64,000 bases of DNA. Origin: Ascidiella aspersa. Taxonomy: Eukaryota. The notes below the pieces were generated by a model that was not told the origin of the DNA, searched no databases, and worked only from the letters and a program-made list of their open reading frames with translations. The translations under genes were made by a program, and so were the position numbers. Positions 9,201-20,351 of this stretch are shown piece after piece. The stretch covers positions 11,098,001 to 11,162,000 of the forward strand of contig OZ004609.1 of assembly GCA_963924565.1 (NCBI GenBank), in the 5' to 3' direction. The number at the start of each line of letters is the position of its first letter. The stretch's first letter is position 1.

Positions 9201-12200
9201 AGTTTACAGCTCAATCCCACTTGTACTTTAGCAAACTTGTCTAATCATCTCTACACCACTGTACAGTACTATAGATTTCCCCATTTCAAATATCTACATC
9301 TTGGTACATATGACTTTGCTATATGAGTGTGCAAATTGCGAAGTAGGTTGACTCAACACTTACTAACCAGCATCGCTGTTAAGTTGAACAATAAATTTGT
9401 CCACTAAAAAGTGATTATGTGTTCAAAATACAGTTTCTTTTGAACCGATTTGTTCAAATATAAATAGCATAAATCTAAACATATATAGTCAAGCGGGGTA
9501 AAAAAAAACAATTTTAGCTAACTTTTGTTTTTCGCAACAGAAGTGTAATTTTTCATTCTTATTGAGCTGATGGGTCTACCTTCCCAATCACATAAAGAAT
9601 TTTTAATTTTATTATGAAATAAAAAAATTATTTTACAAAATCTGTTTTTTTTTTTACCCTGATGAAAGGGCAAAGAAAAACAATGCCGGGGTAAAAAAAA
9701 AACAAGTGTACATTAGGACCATTTATAATAATTTAGCAGGTTTGACTTTATTTGAAGTAAATAGACCAAAAATGCTCTTTTAAAGCCACAACAACACACA
9801 AATTTCATGAACACCTTTATTGTAAAGAGAATTTAAGTAAAAAAAATTTTTTATGATTACATTATGGTACCTGAATTTGCACCTGTTTAAAATCTTTTTA
9901 GCAACTAATTTCTCCCTGGTAAACTAAAACTGTGCCATTCCACAGTTAGCACTGGTCATCAGTGGTATTTCTTGGCCCCAGAAGAAGTAAATTACCTCAA
10001 CAACATGAGTTTTTAGATTTGTGGGCCAGTTCGAGGACAACCTGGAATTATTAGATTTTTCTTCTTTTTTTGGAAAAAAATTGCTAAGTTGGCTTTATTT
10101 TATCCTAATCATTACAAAAAACGTTCATATTTTCCCCCTATGTTATGGGACAAGTCTAAATTGCTCAAGTCTACCTCTGTGATCTGCACTTGTTTAGGTT
10201 CTGGGCCACTTGTTATATTTTATAAAAATAAGTTTTCTACTTTTTCTACTAAGGTAAATTTATAGAAGTTTAACATCTCAAGGTAATTACTTCCTACTGT
10301 TAAGGCAAATTTTGATCAATTAACCTGAAGAAAATAACTCTAGAAGTTTGAATTTATTCTATTTTGCCTGTTTGAGCATAATAATACCTTCATGTGGTAT
10401 TGATTTGGATCGCGATACACTTAGTTAAAAATATCGGGTATCGCATCGGTATCAGAATAATTTTTTTTCAAGTCCCTATTCGTGACTGATTAATTTCATC
10501 AAATGTTTCACTTTCTCTGGCACTTATATTATTCATTCATTTTGGTGTATAGCTTTAAATTTTTATGAAGCTTTGGTATTGGACCATTGGTACATATTTG
10601 CTAGGCATATTTAGTTTACTTTTTAAACCTAAAAATTACAAAAAAAAATTATGGGGTAAAAAAAATTACATTGCGGGAATAAAAAACACTGTTTTTTTTA
10701 CCCAGTTCCCATAGAATCGATCGGGGTAAAAAACAACAACAAAATATCTAAAAAAATAAAACAGCTAGGAAAATAAGGTATTTTTTGTTTAACAGATCTA
10801 TGTTATGACACAACACAGAATAAAGGCCGTTGCCACAAACTTGGTTGTATACGAATTACACAAACGTTTCTAATGGTCTTACAAACCTTTTTAAGATACG
10901 TATTTAACAACTGTTGTTTAAAGGCATAACTTTACTCAGAGAACAAAATTTAGGATGCTTGAGGGGTAATTGGTTAGGCCAAGAAACTAATTTTTACCTT
11001 AAAAAAGAAATTATATATACATTAGGTGTGATGGCATTGTTTTTTTTACCCCAACTTTAGCAAAAATTTTTTTACCTCAAGTGACTATACATGTACATAA
11101 GTTTTGTTTGATTAAAAGTCTGGCTATACATTCACACAAGAAGTATTACCAAACCTGTAATATTTAAAGTAAAGTTTCCATTTCTTTTTGTCCAGCTGCT
11201 ACCTTGCTGGACTTTATCAAGTTTGGGATTTGGCACTATTTTAAAGGGGATAATTTCTTTGATTCCATCCAAGACAAAATTGAGTTCACCAGAAGACTGC
11301 CTCACTGTCTCTTTAAATAAGAATTTTGTCAGTATATAAACATGATTTAAAGAATAGGCTACTTAAAAGCAGATAAATATATTTGTTTCCCAAAACAACA
11401 TATTCACTTATAATGTGAAGTTGTGATTGATTACTGACCCATTGGTGGCACACTAAAAAATAAGGTATCCCCAGATATATCAGGAGTGCATTTGATTTTA
11501 AAGGCAAGATTCCCAATTGTTAGATTAACATAGGGATTAGATACAGAATTGAAGTTTCCACCGCTGACCCTTCTAGTTACTCCTCCACTGAAACACAAGG
11601 AAAACACCATCTATTTTATCGTGGTAGGTAACTTAAAACAAACAACAAATTATGGAAAAAATTTGTCAAAGAAGTTTGGTAACCATTGTCAAATTAAAAA
11701 AAATTTTTGCTCCTACCTTTTTATACATTTCACTTGACGTCTCCCGCTAAACCAGGGGTCTTCAAGGTAGTAAAATTTTGAGGATGCATTGAGGTGTGCA
11801 CCATCAACAGAAATGACAACTTGTTCTTTTTCTGGATTGAGGTGAGTTTCCAATTCCAACGGAGATGTGGTACAATGGATTTTGTCACTAGAGATGGAAA
11901 ATATCTTGCAAATAGAACCTGAAACATTAACAACAGCTTCGGAGCCAACATTCAAATTTTCACCCAAAACTGTAAGATTTGTTCCACCACTTTTCGGCCC
12001 GAATGTTGGAGAAAATGACCTTATTGAAGTTTGAACAAATGTGAAATTGGATTGGGATGTGTCAGTGCCATTTATGCTGTAAAGGTCGTTGAAGTATTGG
12101 GGCAACCTGGTCGGAGTAAATGAGTGAACAGATATTTGAAGAGGGGCAGATACAGGAGGATTTTTAAAATATTTAGAACTTTGGTTCACTGAAGTTGTTA

Positions 12201-14046
12201 AACATTCAAGATAACTGTAGCTGCTAATACCGACAGGAATGCAAGATGCAATATTACCAATCTTGATTATTTGAATTTGCCTTGCAGAACTAATTGTGTG
12301 ACCAAGAGCGTCACCTTGTATCTTAATTAGAGTATTTCCTTGAAGTGGACCTGACTTTGGTGTGAAACCTGATATCTTAATTGGGCATGTTGTGTCTGAC
12401 CAAACATCCTTGCAAGCTTCTCTGGCAGAACAGATGCGTGATGAATAACAAAATCCACAGTTAAGAAAGCGAATGTGCATGCACTCAGCACATGTTTTAG
12501 CTGCCCCGCATGCAGCAACTGTAGGAATCTTGTAGAAAGAACTTTCACCGATAGCAAAAATGGAGTCGTTGTTTTGGGAAACCTTCAGATTAGTTAGTGG
12601 TTTGTTTGTGACTTCCACTGAAGCCTCCTGTACTCCAGTAGGTTGGTATGAATTAAGATTGAATAATCGCAGTTGGCCGTCAAGGGTTCCGATTGCAGCA
12701 ACTGTTGTGTCTTTGTAGATAAATGTTGTCAGTGAAATGAGCGTGGAAGAATTTTTTAAGTCCGTTTCTTCATTTTGAACTAAAATGTTTTCATAACAAG
12801 CTGGAATGTTTGCTTCAATATAATGATTTTTGTTCGTAGCAGTTGAACCTGGGCAACTTACAGCAGGCTGATCTGGGTTTGGTGCATCGCAATTCCTTCC
12901 TTTAGGAAATTGACCCTTCTGAAACAAAAATTCCAAACCAGGATCAAATTGCTTCTGATTATTACAGGTCTGTATTGCCATGTCGAATCGTGCTACAATA
13001 TCCTTCATTGGAAATGCACACAAAACTGTTCCCTGTGATAGATCCAGTTGATCAGGAGTGTTATCCATAGGGGTGCCTGCCAGGACAAACAGCATCGCAG
13101 CTGTGTTGGTCACAGGTTTGTTTGAGTTGCATTTGTAAGTAGTGAATCTATTATTTACAACATATGAAAAGTGTGCGTCAATAGTAAGGTTGTATTTCTT
13201 TTTTGCCTTGCTCCGACATTGCAGAATTAGCTCAGTATAACTGTAAAATGCCTGATCGTTGTTGCAAACCCGTGCAAGTTTAATGTTGAGTTTCGAACTT
13301 GTCTTTACAGTTCTTCGTTGTCTAGTCAAAAAATATGTAAAACCACTGTACGTAAAAGCATAGATATAATCAATTTTGTAGGATTTCAAATAACTTTTGT
13401 GCACAGAAATTTCTGAAAAAATTTCCAAATCTGTACGATTAGTTACTAACTGGAAACCACCATTAAGCAACTTTTTTCTTGATAGCGATTGTTGCATGTT
13501 CACCGGTATGGTAGAATCCAAAGTGCGTGCAAAATAGAACACATTGTCTTCTGTTGGATCCGTTGACAAAATTCCAACTGTACTACCAGTCTGACTTACT
13601 ATATAATCAGAGTTAATAGAGTTTTGGTTAAGTGTAGTAAATGATGTTATGTTTGAAGTTGAATGCATTCGACATATTCCGTTATTTAATGTACCACAAG
13701 CAATGAAATGTTGTCTGTTAGTATCAAACAGCAACAACTTAACTTGATTGTCCAAAGTAGTTTCTGTTGGCAATGTGTTGCTATTAGAAATGTTGCAGAC
13801 ACACTGAAGTCTGCTTTTATCATAACAAGATGTGCTAAGAAGTTTTAAGTCTTTAGTAAGGCTATACACTTTGTTATTTCCTCCAATAAAGATTTTTTCA
13901 TTGGTGGGATCAATCACATAGGAAAAAATTGAAGATCTGCTACAATCAGAAAAAGTCTGTATTTGACTGTTGACTTGTGATAAACAGGGTGGAACGTACA
14001 TCAGTATGACTGAAAACAAGATCCATACCAGAACATAAACAGACAT
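76..14046 (-). CDS. MET: MET/RON-family (HGF receptor-like) receptor tyrosine kinase, 17 coding exons, ~1530 aa
   Basis: Exons (minus): 14046-11717, 11587-11439, 11310-11155, 9182-9063, 8995-8853, 8585-8461, 8156-8032, 7692-7552, 6848-6707, 5114-4982, 4361-4141, 2968-2799, 2601-2491, 1994-1872, 1214-1140, 640-448, 211-76; all GT-AG and phase-compatible. Signal peptide, SEMA, PSI, 4 IPT, TM, then kinase ([32 protein letters not shown]) and the YVNV docking site. The last four exons are less certain. Confidence 0.9.
448..640 (-). CDS. MET-like tail exon with two D-E-x-G-Y-L-L-P motifs
   Basis: [11 protein letters not shown] and [11 protein letters not shown]; phase-compatible. Confidence 0.7.
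1140..1214 (-). CDS. MET-like tail exon (Ser-rich)
   Basis: TTTGCAG / GTCAGT, 75 nt, open, phase 1-1. Confidence 0.6.
1872..1994 (-). CDS. MET-like tail exon (PVPPPR)
   Basis: TTTCCAG acceptor in phase 1; alternatively this exon reads on to a stop at 1858. Confidence 0.7.
2100..2270. repeat. two diverged ~70 bp direct repeats ~100 bp apart
   Basis: GGGTGTAAT...TTTTAGGACAAAAA(A)CAAA.CAA.GCACC at ~2100 and ~2202. Confidence 0.6.
2491..2601 (-). CDS. MET: MET-like docking-site exon
   Basis: [14 protein letters not shown] matches MET YVNVKCVAPYPSL. Confidence 0.88.
2799..2968 (-). CDS. MET: MET-like kinase C-lobe exon
   Basis: [28 protein letters not shown]...RPEFKQLV...HY. Confidence 0.92.
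4141..4361 (-). CDS. MET: MET-like kinase exon (DFG, activation loop)
   Basis: [16 protein letters not shown]...[12 protein letters not shown]...DVWSF...WELVTRG; not in the ORF track, translated by hand. Confidence 0.94.
4982..5114 (-). CDS. MET: MET-like kinase exon (catalytic loop)
   Basis: [39 protein letters not shown]. Confidence 0.94.
5290..6279. mobile_element. non-autonomous hAT element (deletion derivative) in a MET intron
   Basis: 16 bp perfect TIR CAGGGGCGTGCAACCT; TSD GTGTAAAT/TTGTAAAT; transposase remnant ALFGSTYVC at ~5814-5840. Confidence 0.85.
5870..6185. mobile_element. hAT MITE nested in the previous element
   Basis: TIR CAGTGGT(A/C)GGCCAACT; perfect 8 bp TSD CACTAACA. 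Confidence 0.9.
6707..6848 (-). CDS. MET: MET-like kinase exon
   Basis: [17 protein letters not shown]...[16 protein letters not shown]. Confidence 0.92.
7552..7692 (-). CDS. MET: MET-like kinase exon (Gly loop, VAVK)
   Basis: [11 protein letters not shown]...VAVKTLSRI...FLREG. Confidence 0.92.
8032..8156 (-). CDS. MET: MET-like exon (juxtamembrane to kinase start)
   Basis: [25 protein letters not shown] resembles MET [25 protein letters not shown]. Confidence 0.85.
8461..8585 (-). CDS. MET: MET-like exon (TM end, juxtamembrane)
   Basis: [13 protein letters not shown] followed by the basic stop-transfer KKNKRK. Confidence 0.85.
8853..8995 (-). CDS. MET: MET-like exon (IPT4 end, start of TM)
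   Basis: FNVTVFLG...ELGSIDI...AIVAPIVAV. Confidence 0.8.
9063..9182 (-). CDS. MET: MET-like exon (IPT4)
   Basis: [23 protein letters not shown]...LYCH; TTTTGTAG / GTAAGT. Confidence 0.8.
9486..11087. mobile_element. non-autonomous DNA transposon-like element with internal GGGGTAAAAAAA repeats
   Basis: Ends TAGTCA...GGTAAAAAAA / TTTTTTACC...TGACTA, flanked by TA; motif repeated in both orientations (~9494, 9650, 9687, 10653, 10692, 10722, 11041). Confidence 0.65.
11155..11310 (-). CDS. MET: MET-like exon (IPT3/4)
   Basis: GELNFVLDG...VPNPK...LNITG; phase 1-1. Confidence 0.8.
11439..11587 (-). CDS. MET: MET-like exon (IPT3)
   Basis: [21 protein letters not shown]; TTTCAG acceptor, GTCAGT donor. 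Confidence 0.8.
11717..14046 (-). CDS. MET: MET-like coding exon 1: signal peptide, SEMA, PSI, IPT1-2
   Basis: ATG 14046 ([16 protein letters not shown], hydrophobic leader); SEMA motifs ([22 protein letters not shown]); PSI CxxCxxC; [13 protein letters not shown] and [10 protein letters not shown]; donor AG|GTAGGA. Confidence 0.93.
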
Positions 14047-14071
14047 TATGTAATACCAGTTTAACAAACAT

Positions 14072-14275
14072 CTAAAAAAATATAAACATACATTTTTGTA
14101 CTTCAACCGATAATGGATTTTTTGCTAGTACACCATAATCGGTTAATTCAACCTTTTAGCAAAAATATATTCATGGATGTGTAGGATTCGCACAGGTCAA
14201 AATAAACAAGATGACTAAAGTGTCAAGATTAATAGCGACACAATAAACTATAACTCACAACTGTACAGTACTTAC
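14072..14275 (-). other. probable 5'UTR intron of the MET-like gene
   Basis: GTAAGT donor at 14275 and TTTTTTTAG acceptor at 14072, 25 nt before the ATG. Confidence 0.5.
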
Positions 14276-17200: not shown

Positions 17201-17336
17201 TCCGATGTCGAGCTGAAACAAGCATTTCAAAGTGAAGGTCTACTCGACTTTTGGGGTCGAGTCCCAGAGAAAAATATCCCAACTTAATAAGTAATGCCCT
17301 TAAGTATGCCTCTGTATTTGGTTCAACTTACGTATG

Positions 17337-17469
17337 TGTGGTAAATTTGTGCCATGTACCTTATTCTATGTTATGTATTACGCTGTGTTTATTTGTGACA
17401 TGTTGTGTTGCAGGTAATGTTTAGTTTAAATTCAGTTCATAAAAACCTAGCAATCCCTAGGTCACCACA
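17337..17469 (+). repeat. 5' LTR (133 bp, TG...CA)
   Basis: TGTGGT...ACCACA inverted termini; identical to 20096-20227. Confidence 0.95.
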
Positions 17470-17470
17470 A

Positions 17471-17482
17471 TTTTATGAACTG
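17471..17482 (+). other. self-complementary primer-binding site
   Basis: TTTTATGAACTG is the exact reverse complement of LTR 17433-17444 CAGTTCATAAAA; no TGG tRNA-type PBS. Confidence 0.75.
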
Positions 17483-17518
17483 CTTTGTTAACATTGACCT
17501 TGTGCTTTACCAATCGCC

Positions 17519-18280
17519 ATGGAGAGACTGATGAGGCCAGACCGTCTGGAACTTGATCCCAATGACCCAGAGGCCATTAAAATGTATAAACATTGGTGGC
17601 GTTCATTTGATGGTTTTATTCGAGCCATTGAGAAAACACAAAATAGCCATCGGAGTGGAACCAGCCAAGAAACAGGTGGTGTTATTACTTTATCATCAGA
17701 AGAAAAATTAGACCTCCTTGTCAATGGCATATCACATAAACTCTACTCCTATGTAGAATCCTGTGAAACCTTTCAATCTGCTAAAGAGACTCTTAACAAA
17801 GTTTTTCTGAAAGAAAATAACATCACAGTAGCTCGTCATTTATTGATGGTGAGAAAACAGAAACCGGATGAGAACCTAACTGATTTCATGTATGCTTTGC
17901 ATGAGCTTTCTAAATCCTGTGATTTTCAGGATGTCGATGCAGATACTTATCGACAAGAAATGGTTCGCGACTCCTTTATTAGTGGCATGGTAGCCCCCGA
18001 CATCCGACAAAGACTTCTTGAGAAAAATAAGGTTACCTGTAAAGAAGCCTTCGATCAAGCCTTGGTGTTAGAACGAGCAAGGAATGAGGCCGTGACCTTT
18101 ATTAAGGAAACTACAAATGTGACCATTGCAGCCGCAGAGACTCCTGAGTCCACTGTTTTTGCAATAGCTAAGAAAGATTGTTTCTACTGTGGAGGTATGC
18201 AAATAGACCCACAGCGCGTCGGAGTTCAGCAAGTGTTTGAAGCCACTCTTGGACATGCCCGTGCCTCAAACACTTGCTGA
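17519..18280 (+). CDS. gag: retrotransposon Gag, truncated in its zinc knuckle
   Basis: RPDRLELDPN...HW, RHLLMVRKQKPDE, VRDSFISG...IRQRLLE; only CFYC of the CCHC knuckle remains. Confidence 0.85.
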   Translation: MERLMRPDRLELDPNDPEAIKMYKHWWRSFDGFIRAIEKTQNSHRSGTSQETGGVITLSSEEKLDLLVNGISHKLYSYVESCETFQSAKETLNKVFLKENNITVARHLLMVRKQKPDENLTDFMYALHELSKSCDFQDVDADTYRQEMVRDSFISGMVAPDIRQRLLEKNKVTCKEAFDQALVLERARNEAVTFIKETTNVTIAAAETPESTVFAIAKKDCFYCGGMQIDPQRVGVQQVFEATLGHARASNTC

Positions 18281-20012
18281 ACTCCGACGCGCTGTGGGTC
18301 TATTTGCATACTATGCCCGTTGGGTTCATCAGTTTTCAGATAAGGTTCGACCCCTTGTCAAAGCCATTCAGGAAAAGGCTCTCCCATTGGCTAAACCACA
18401 AGCTATGGCTTTTGCAGAGCTTAGAAAAAGTTTGGCTTCCGCCTGTCTGAAAAATATTGATCCTTATCAACCCTTTACTGTGGAGTGTGATGCCTCCCAA
18501 TTTGCACTGGCCGCTACCCTGAACCAATGTGGTCGCCCTGTCGCTTTTTACTCCCAGACCTTTACAAAAAGCGAACTCAACTACCCTATCGTGGAGAAGG
18601 AGGCTACAGCTATTATGGAGGCTACGAGAAAATGGAGTCATTTCTTGCATGGTAACACCTTTACATTATTGACTGACCAGCGTGCTCTTTCTTATATGTT
18701 TGATCCTGTCCGCCCAGGTAAAATTAAAAATGCTAAGTTCCAGCTGTGGCGAGCTGAACTGGGGGCCTTTTCATATCGCGTTCACCACCGTCCTGGTAAA
18801 CTAAACACTGCTCCGGATGCCCTTTCAAGAATTTCTTCTCTATGTTTCATGGGAAATGCTGGACTAGTCCAAATCCATAGGCAATTGGGGCACCCTGGGG
18901 TAACACGCCTACTTCATTTTATAAAAGCGCGCAACTTACCTTACTCTATTAATGAGGTTCGGCAAACATGTGCAGAATGTAAAGTTTGTGCCGAAGTAAA
19001 ACCTCGTTTTCACCGCAAGTCTAATGAGTCTTTAATCAAAGCTTCTGCTCCATGGGAAAGAATTAGCATTGATTTTAAAGGACCTGTCAGGGGTAGAAGA
19101 CATTACATTCTCTTTGTGGTGGATGAGTTTTCCCGTTTTCCTTTTGCAATTCCCTGTTCTGACATGACTACGAAAACCGTCATAGCTTCGCTAACTTCAC
19201 TTTTTGCTCTTTTTGGTCTACCCTCTTTCGTCCACAGTGACCGGGGCACAGCCTTTGCTTCTGGTGAATTTAAAAAGTTTTTGACCGATAGAGGAGTGGT
19301 ACCAAGTCGGACTACTCCCTATCATCCTACTGGTAACAGCCAATGTGAAAGAGTGAACCAAACCATATGGCGAACAGTTAAACTCCTTTTAAAGGACAGG
19401 GGTCTGGGAGAAGATAGATGGGAAGAAATCTTAGTGGAGGCCCTTCATTCCGTAAGATCTCTGCTTTGCACCTCAACAAACCAAACCCCTCATGAGCGTT
19501 TCTTAAACTTCGGACGAAGAACTATGCTGGGAAGATCATTACCATCATGGCTGCTCCAGCCTGGAAAAGTTTTGATGAGACGATTTGTGCGAAATAAAGG
19601 AGATCCCTTAGTTGATGAGGTAGACTTGCTGGAAGCCAATCAAAGTTTTGCACATATTCGGCTTCCAGGGGGGCGTGAATCGACAGTGTCTGTGCAGGAT
19701 TTAGCTCCTTGCCCTGAAGACCATGAAGTCCCTCCACTGCCAGATGCAGAATCCTTTGGCGAGTCTCTTGAAAATGGAGTCCCAATTTCTACCAATTCGC
19801 CTCCCCATACTACTAGGCCATCTACAGGTACTACACCAGAATCTGCATTGGACAGATCATCGGTAGAAGATTTGGCTCATGGTACAGATGAGTTACCTCC
19901 TACTTCACCTTCTCCTTTTGCGTTTCCACCTGCTTCGCCTACTGGTTTGCAAGTGAGGCGTTCATCCAGAATTCATAAACCCCCTTCACGGTTTGGGGAT
20001 TGGACTCATTAA
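18237..20012 (+). CDS. pol: partial Pol: RT connection, RNase H and integrase
   Basis: RNase H CDAS/EKE/TDQ/DALSR; integrase HHCC (H..LGH...C..C), IDFKGP, SDRG, SQCER; first in-frame ATG 18255. Confidence 0.92.
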   Translation: MKPLLDMPVPQTLAELRRAVGLFAYYARWVHQFSDKVRPLVKAIQEKALPLAKPQAMAFAELRKSLASACLKNIDPYQPFTVECDASQFALAATLNQCGRPVAFYSQTFTKSELNYPIVEKEATAIMEATRKWSHFLHGNTFTLLTDQRALSYMFDPVRPGKIKNAKFQLWRAELGAFSYRVHHRPGKLNTAPDALSRISSLCFMGNAGLVQIHRQLGHPGVTRLLHFIKARNLPYSINEVRQTCAECKVCAEVKPRFHRKSNESLIKASAPWERISIDFKGPVRGRRHYILFVVDEFSRFPFAIPCSDMTTKTVIASLTSLFALFGLPSFVHSDRGTAFASGEFKKFLTDRGVVPSRTTPYHPTGNSQCERVNQTIWRTVKLLLKDRGLGEDRWEEILVEALHSVRSLLCTSTNQTPHERFLNFGRRTMLGRSLPSWLLQPGKVLMRRFVRNKGDPLVDEVDLLEANQSFAHIRLPGGRESTVSVQDLAPCPEDHEVPPLPDAESFGESLENGVPISTNSPPHTTRPSTGTTPESALDRSSVEDLAHGTDELPPTSPSPFAFPPASPTGLQVRRSSRIHKPPSRFGDWTH

Positions 20013-20083
20013 AAATGAACCCTTAAAATTGTTTAAATGAAACAATGTTTTTTTGTTGGGTGTACAGTGTACTTTCATTATTT

Positions 20084-20095
20084 AGAGGGGAAAAA
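20084..20095 (+). other. polypurine tract
   Basis: AGAGGGGAAAAA directly before the 3' LTR. Confidence 0.85.
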
Positions 20096-20227
20096 TGTGG
20101 TAAATTTGTGCCATGTACCTTATTCTATGTTATGTATTACGCTGTGTTTATTTGTGACATGTTGTGTTGCAGGTAATGTTTAGTTTAAATTCAGTTCATA
20201 AAAACCTAGCAATCCCTAGGTCACCAC
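20096..20227 (+). repeat. 3' LTR (terminal base and right TSD not recognisable)
   Basis: 132/132 identical to the 5' LTR, then interrupted by a foldback repeat. Confidence 0.95.
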
Positions 20228-20351
20228 GTTAGGGTTAGCATTTGGGTGAGGATGGGTCAAGTAATATTATGTTTATTATTAATAATAACTTGACCCACCC
20301 TTAACCAAACGCTAACCCTAACCCACACAATATGCGTTGTGGTATGCGGCA
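20228..20351. repeat. foldback repeat with telomere-like GTTAGGGTTAG arms
   Basis: ~40 bp imperfect inverted arms (20228-20270 / 20282-20322); related sequences at ~15215-15350, ~23900-23940, ~35980-36058. Confidence 0.7.

Follow-up and report, generated by a model that had tools for sequence, protein, structure and literature searches.

How does a long terminal repeat (LTR) retrotransposon start reverse transcription when no tRNA-type primer-binding site (PBS) follows its 5' LTR? The question is raised by a Gypsy element in a 64,000-nucleotide stretch of the Ascidiella aspersa genome (contig OZ004609.1, positions 11,098,001 to 11,162,000 of the forward strand), called the window here. The element, a defective, internally deleted copy, occupies positions 17337-20227 of the window. 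A preliminary description of the locus had proposed that this element, which seemed to lack a chromodomain, primes reverse transcription with its own RNA. The proposal is now supported by covariation between the PBS and the LTR of related elements. Judging from the sequences, Tf1-type self-priming in a non-chromoviral, pan-metazoan Gypsy lineage is the best reading and a probable one, because the geometry and the minimal length of the duplex are those of Tf1 and a stem-loop flanks the duplex.

Complementarity between the LTR and the primer-binding site

Direct reading of the window sequence revealed that the 5' LTR is not followed by a TGG-type tRNA site. Instead, positions 17471-17482 (12 nt) and positions 17433-17444 inside the LTR are exact reverse complements of each other, and the bases adjacent to both stretches are unpaired. 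A 12-nt match starting at most 5 nt from the LTR end appeared in 0 of 20,000 shuffles of the LTR. Immediately after the LTR segment, ACCTAG (17445-17450) pairs with CTAGGT (17457-17462) to form a hairpin stem, and the 50-nt RNA 17433-17482 folds at -17.5 kcal/mol (z = -8.7) into the two stacked helices that were predicted. The perfect complement, the missing TGG and the hairpin had all been pointed out in the preliminary description, and all three have stood up to the analysis.

The family to which the window copy belongs comprises about a dozen copies and additional solo LTRs in the 308-Mb genome. Full-length relatives measure 4,172 bp. In at least one copy, which served in the analysis only as a protein query, gag, protease (PR), reverse transcriptase (RT), RNase H (RH) and integrase (IN) are encoded in one frame of 1,257 codons, in the order gag-PR-RT-RH-IN. 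The Pfam domains of a full-length relative follow the order gag-asp_proteas, RVT_1, RT_RNaseH and rve, and the best solved relative of the full-length protein is Ty3 Gag-Pol (E 4.5e-67). With its LTRs, PBS, polypurine tract and the PR-RT-RNase H-IN order of the full-length relative, the element is a member of Ty3/Gypsy (Metaviridae). The absence of a chromodomain was confirmed: Pfam gave no match to PF00385 at E<=0.01 in the window copy or the full-length relative, and no chromodomain was present in the best 120 homologues. No match to a Tf2-type SH3 domain was obtained by Pfam with the full-length relative.

Within the family, the LTR segment and the PBS changed together. The younger LTR type has C at the sixth base of the segment and the matching G in the PBS at 8/8 loci, two of which represent one insertion copied by segmental duplication (C5:15007105-15011266 and C5:15072078-15076238, about 65 kb apart, with identical flanks on both sides). 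The older LTR type, found in diverged copies and solo LTRs, has A at this base, which gives the canonical AATAAA, and the PBS shows the matching T in all three older-type copies that retain it. Eleven pairs, one of them a G-U, persist in a relative of 77% identity, and one decayed copy of the family is discordant between segment and PBS.

The same genome harbours a second family with 57% RT-IN identity, LTRs of about 310 bp and an unrelated 12-mer. One spacer A separates its LTR, which contains TTGTTGATTAAA, from the exact complement of this 12-mer. The distant Gypsy family L080 (about 32% identity) served as a control: TGGTGACCCC, a normal TGG site, lies two bases beyond the end of its LTR, and no self-complement was found between its LTR and PBS. 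This tRNA-primed control (L080/L081, C8:14949600-14955400) sits inside a long tandem-repeat array. Three more distant families of this genome, L066, L075 and L076 (47%, 46% and 40% identity), are truncated or degraded, which leaves them without a legible LTR and PBS. A chromodomain beside an integrase was also considered as a possible chromovirus in this genome and rejected: at L074 (C2:7088000-7094500), the integrase with its C-terminal chromodomain adjoins an adenovirus IVa2-like packaging ATPase. This is a Polinton/Maverick-like unit with several genome copies and not an LTR element.

The same design was found in 14 families: an LTR ending in ACA, one A, and an 11-17-nt site complementary to a segment of the family's own LTR, situated in the relatives 23-61 nt upstream of the LTR end. 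Two of these families and a sub-lineage come from the A. aspersa genome. The rest come from other animals, namely a leafhopper (L070), a sea anemone (L071 and L079), a snail (L077) and a whipworm (L078), or from six environmental or Logan contigs: two ENA assemblies (L072 and L073), two Logan contigs (L082 and L083) and two JGI contigs (L084 and L085). At L071 (1-1301, 5267-5904), the sea-anemone element lies inside a long tandem-repeat array with a 53-bp period. RT-IN identity among the families is only 50-69%, and the letters of the segment differ from family to family. In the homologue search, 2,333 of the 8,000 candidates scored reached E<=1e-30; they typically have 1,200-1,240 residues and lie on contigs of 4.0-4.2 kb.

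The check that the preliminary description had named in advance, covariation of PBS and LTR in relatives, proved clearly positive in these 14 families, which span several animal phyla. When 12 families were tabulated by script, pairs 1-11 counted from the primer 3' end were Watson-Crick except for one G-U and one A-C, and pairing decayed past position 11-13. Runs of pairs beyond the hexamer at the primer 3' end averaged 6.9 within a family's own LTR and PBS vs 1.3 in cross-family combinations. The formal pair count covers nine non-window families, as MAFFT put the window family out of register. Paired cells made up 96.6% vs 75.4 ± 2.6 in shuffled combinations (0/500), compensatory changes on both sides occurred at 7 of the 13 pairs, and only 29-50% of cells were paired when the partners were slid by 1-3 columns. 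In L084 the hexamer itself is changed to AATAGA and the PBS compensates for it.

A poly(A)-signal-type hexamer is another common feature of the segments, which end in AATAAA, ATTAAA or, in the window family, CATAAA in 13/14 families. The older sister subfamily has AATAAA, and 11 other families have AATAAA or ATTAAA. GCC or ACC usually comes next and begins the hairpin that abuts the duplex; in the folded relatives, too, a hairpin adjoins the hexamer. The last 23-61 nt of the LTR are mostly GT- or T-rich. Since a hexamer with a GT- or T-rich tail is the usual arrangement of a poly(A) signal and its downstream element, we infer that the hexamer is the poly(A) signal of the LTR. The terminally repeated region R would in that case be short (roughly 30-40 nt), and the GT-rich tail would be U5. 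In animal Metaviridae, AATAAA has been reported to be conserved close to the LTR 3' end (PMC3601003). It is probable that the hexamer guides 3'-end formation from the 3' LTR and that base pairing hides its 5' copy. Such masking would be compatible with priming rather than a rival to it.

Candidate routes of priming

In the self-priming reading, transcription would start at the primer segment, so that the LTR stretch 17433-17444 near the transcript 5' end could fold back onto the PBS at 17471-17482, the adjacent hairpin helping to shape the substrate. Cleavage by the element's RNase H immediately 3' of the duplex would then free a 3'-OH, from which synthesis would proceed across U5 and the remainder of R and then jump to the 3' R. 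A primer copied during plus-strand synthesis would carry any change of the LTR segment into the PBS. Such copying of a retained primer would keep the PBS matched to the LTR and so explain the concerted changes, and the clean concerted change inside the window family fits it.

Several points weigh against self-priming. The one run of RNA sequencing (RNA-seq) from the species, all its other runs being DNA, gave 142 reads, a coverage of about 1-6x on both strands, with no start or end peak. The initiator-like TCAGTT to which the preliminary description had drawn attention is indeed present at 17432-17437 but is specific to the window family and not conserved in relatives, and the family comparison showed no TATA box at a consistent distance. 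The R left for strand transfer after the cut would be only about 10-25 nt. The window copy itself, from which protease and the RT core are gone, cannot copy itself and would need to be mobilised in trans. Finally, self-priming of the whole lineage is deduced from sequence.

Among the alternatives, the LTR-PBS duplex might be a conserved RNA structure with another job, such as poly(A)-signal masking, packaging or dimerisation, with a different primer in use. The poly(A)-type hexamer at the end of the paired stretch, altered and compensated only in the fourteenth family, makes masking plausible, and the RNA-seq data yielded no transcription start position. We nevertheless regard this explanation as unlikely: the complement lies exactly at the position required of a PBS, one base after the LTR, in 14/14 families, no other candidate site is present, the start codon follows within 1-100 nt, and masking and priming are not mutually exclusive.

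Still less likely is a self-derived primer that reaches the PBS by another route, from the copy of the segment in the 3' LTR (20192-20203) or from a co-packaged second RNA. Cis and trans pairing are indistinguishable by sequence alone, but the cis fold-back is strongly favoured in the RNA fold and is the mechanism shown for Tf1/Tf2.

Priming by a host tRNA, a tRNA half or another small RNA, with the LTR match being incidental, is very improbable, even though half-tRNA priming is known in Ty1/copia lineages (PMC6317226). Besides the missing TGG, the site varies by family even within one genome and always matches the family's own LTR. A 16-mer around the primer segment has 17 matches in the genome, all in LTRs of the window family, the 12-mer by itself occurs less often across the genome than its reversed control does, and no tRNA lies within the 64-kb window. 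A tRNA primer was therefore rejected for this family, whereas the control family L080 has its TGG. A chance inverted repeat or a functionless by-product of LTR formation can be dismissed as practically negligible: although shuffles of the AT-rich, low-complexity LTRs reach 11-15 nt in some cases, 14 independent occurrences at the same position and their compensatory changes effectively refute it.

A wider claim, which we put forward tentatively and as something short of probable, is that an old pan-metazoan non-chromoviral Gypsy lineage self-primes throughout, with a minimal duplex of 11 nt and a primer 3' end that is usually a poly(A) signal. If this is true, one short motif would serve 3'-end formation at the 3' LTR, be masked at the 5' end and become the primer, and this overlap of primer and poly(A) signal would tie priming to RNA 3'-end formation in a simple and testable way. 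Self-priming would either be an ancestral trait of Gypsy elements or have evolved two or more times. As the chromodomain-less lineage extends over cnidarians, molluscs, nematodes, insects and probably tunicates, the mechanism would be common in animals. Whether hairpin priming preceded tRNA priming was raised as an open issue (PMC3601003), and the lineage bears on this question. Host defences directed against tRNA-type primer sites would also fail to reach the elements: silencing by 3' tRNA fragments is described as exploiting tRNA dependence (PMC7472051), and tRNA-free elements would escape it. Annotation is affected as well, because an LTR finder that depends on a tRNA site will overlook such elements or misjudge them.

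The window copy and its surroundings

Table 1 Features of the Gypsy element in the window (window positions)
Feature	Position	Strand	Remarks
5' LTR	17337..17469	+	133 bp, TGTGG...CCACA; 100% over 132 nt vs 20096-20227
Putative self-primer segment CAGTTCATAAAA in LTR, start of R	17433..17444	+	Exact complement of PBS
CATAAA hexamer, poly(A)-signal position, 3' end of primer segment	17438..17443	+	Signal use inferred
Hairpin directly 3' of primer segment, 6-bp stem, 6-nt loop	17445..17462	+	RNA fold
Single spacer A, LTR to PBS	17470	+	ACA + A + PBS layout common to 14/14 families
Predicted primer-binding site TTTTATGAACTG	17471..17482	+	Complementary to 17433-17444, not to a tRNA 3' end
gag, intact to first zinc knuckle	17519..18196	+	Element positions 183-860; 99.9% identity to full-length copy
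40-nt filler, deletion junction	18197..18236	+	Copy of element positions 2214-2253 in inverted orientation
pol remnant: RT connection, RNase H, integrase, Pro/Ser-rich tail	18237..20012	+	Frame differs from gag
Polypurine tract AGAGGGGAAAAA adjoining 3' LTR	20084..20095	+	Identical in all copies
3' LTR	20096..20227	+	132 bp; terminal A replaced by flank G

The features of the window copy are listed in Table 1. Nine other copies, the majority flanked by clean 5-bp target duplications, served to set the end of the 5' LTR (...CCACA). When the window copy was aligned to a full-length one, the filler proved to replace element positions 861-2180 (1,320 bp), so that about residues 227-666, comprising the second knuckle, the protease and the RT core, were lost. 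Of the pol domains, only RNase H and integrase are retained according to Pfam (RT_RNaseH 2.4e-26, rve 1.8e-18). An inverted 40-nt filler from the RT connection region is the type of scar left by template switching. In four RNA-seq reads at L032:275 (LTR position 121), the U5-PBS-leader is fused to an upstream sequence of unknown origin and the hairpin loop is inverted. Their upstream part resembles the inverted RT-connection stretch that forms the filler; these reads may come from a transcribed rearranged copy.

The window copy has no target-site duplication (GTATG at 17332-17336 vs TTAGG at 20228-20232). This, the lost terminal A of the 3' LTR and the truncated repeat abutting it indicate that the locus has been rearranged since insertion. 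The missing duplication and the lost A, despite identical LTRs, suggest inter-copy recombination or a flanking deletion after insertion. The abutting repeat is palindromic and resembles a miniature inverted-repeat transposable element (20228-20322, with arms at 20228-20265 and 20285-20322 and an outer part reaching about 20380). It has no left outer arm. A more complete member of this repeat family has inserted into the degraded Gypsy copy L066, in its 3' region. Elsewhere in the window, a long open frame on the minus strand (11713-14106) with Sema and IPT/TIG domains is probably a plexin-like host exon.

Relation to known systems

Judging by size, single frame, LTR length and spread, the lineage may belong to the Mag C-clade (SURL-like) or the Cigr-1 clade, whose members are likewise compact and widespread among metazoans, with a single frame, TGT...ACA ends and a conserved AATAAA (PMC3601003, PMC6238403). 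The short LTRs of the window lineage are near the mean of 174 bp reported for Mag C (PMC3601003, PMC6238403). LTR lengths and hexamer agree with Mag C/Cigr-1. The end motifs TGTNATRT...AYANAACA of these clades match some families, such as the leafhopper family and the second A. aspersa family, but not the window family. A Ciona protein shares 69% identity with the second A. aspersa family. In the literature searched we found no statement on the priming mode of the Mag C and Cigr-1 clades. Nor was any report of self-priming in a metazoan non-chromoviral Gypsy element found there, although that search did not extend to several older key papers, so an earlier description is possible.

The closest mechanistic parallel is that of Tf1 and Tf2 of Schizosaccharomyces pombe, for which self-priming has been described (PMC7175516, PMC5341516). 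As in these elements, a stretch at the putative transcript start is complementary to the sequence right behind the 5' LTR, and a single gag-pol frame is combined with the lack of a tRNA site. The minimal duplex has 11 nt, as many as the 11 bases of Tf1 (PMC7175516, PMC5341516). Reverse transcription of Tf2 is not possible from a transcript whose start lies downstream of the self-primer (PMC5341516). The window lineage further shares with Tf1/Tf2 a stem-loop beside the duplex. A U5-IR-like stem-loop is said to exist in Tf1, to judge from the title of a 1998 article by Lin and Levin.

The window lineage differs from the Tf1/sushi group in lacking both the chromodomain, which is one of the defining features of the group, and a Tf2-type SH3 match. 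Its Atlas neighbours are named K02A2.6-like and not Tf2-like. Its LTRs (133-390 bp) are far shorter than those of Tf1/Tf2, and its primer, unlike theirs, ends in a poly(A)-signal-type hexamer in all families but one. Indirect signs, namely the domains, the homologues and the names of the Atlas neighbours rather than a tree, point to a place outside the Tf1/sushi clade, in line with the preliminary description.

Self-priming has been shown only for Tf1/Tf2 and was extended by sequence to their chromoviral kin and one plant copia lineage (PMC6317226). The predictions concern Tcn1-like chromoviruses of fungi and mosses and the plant Ty1/copia TAR lineage (Houba, Osr-1; PMC6317226). Whereas priming by Tf1/Tf2 was demonstrated experimentally, priming by the window lineage, like that by the Tcn1-like and TAR elements, is predicted from sequence. 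The window lineage belongs to a different clade or superfamily from the latter two and lives in different hosts. Both of these groups show that the mechanism is not confined to Tf1 (PMC6317226).
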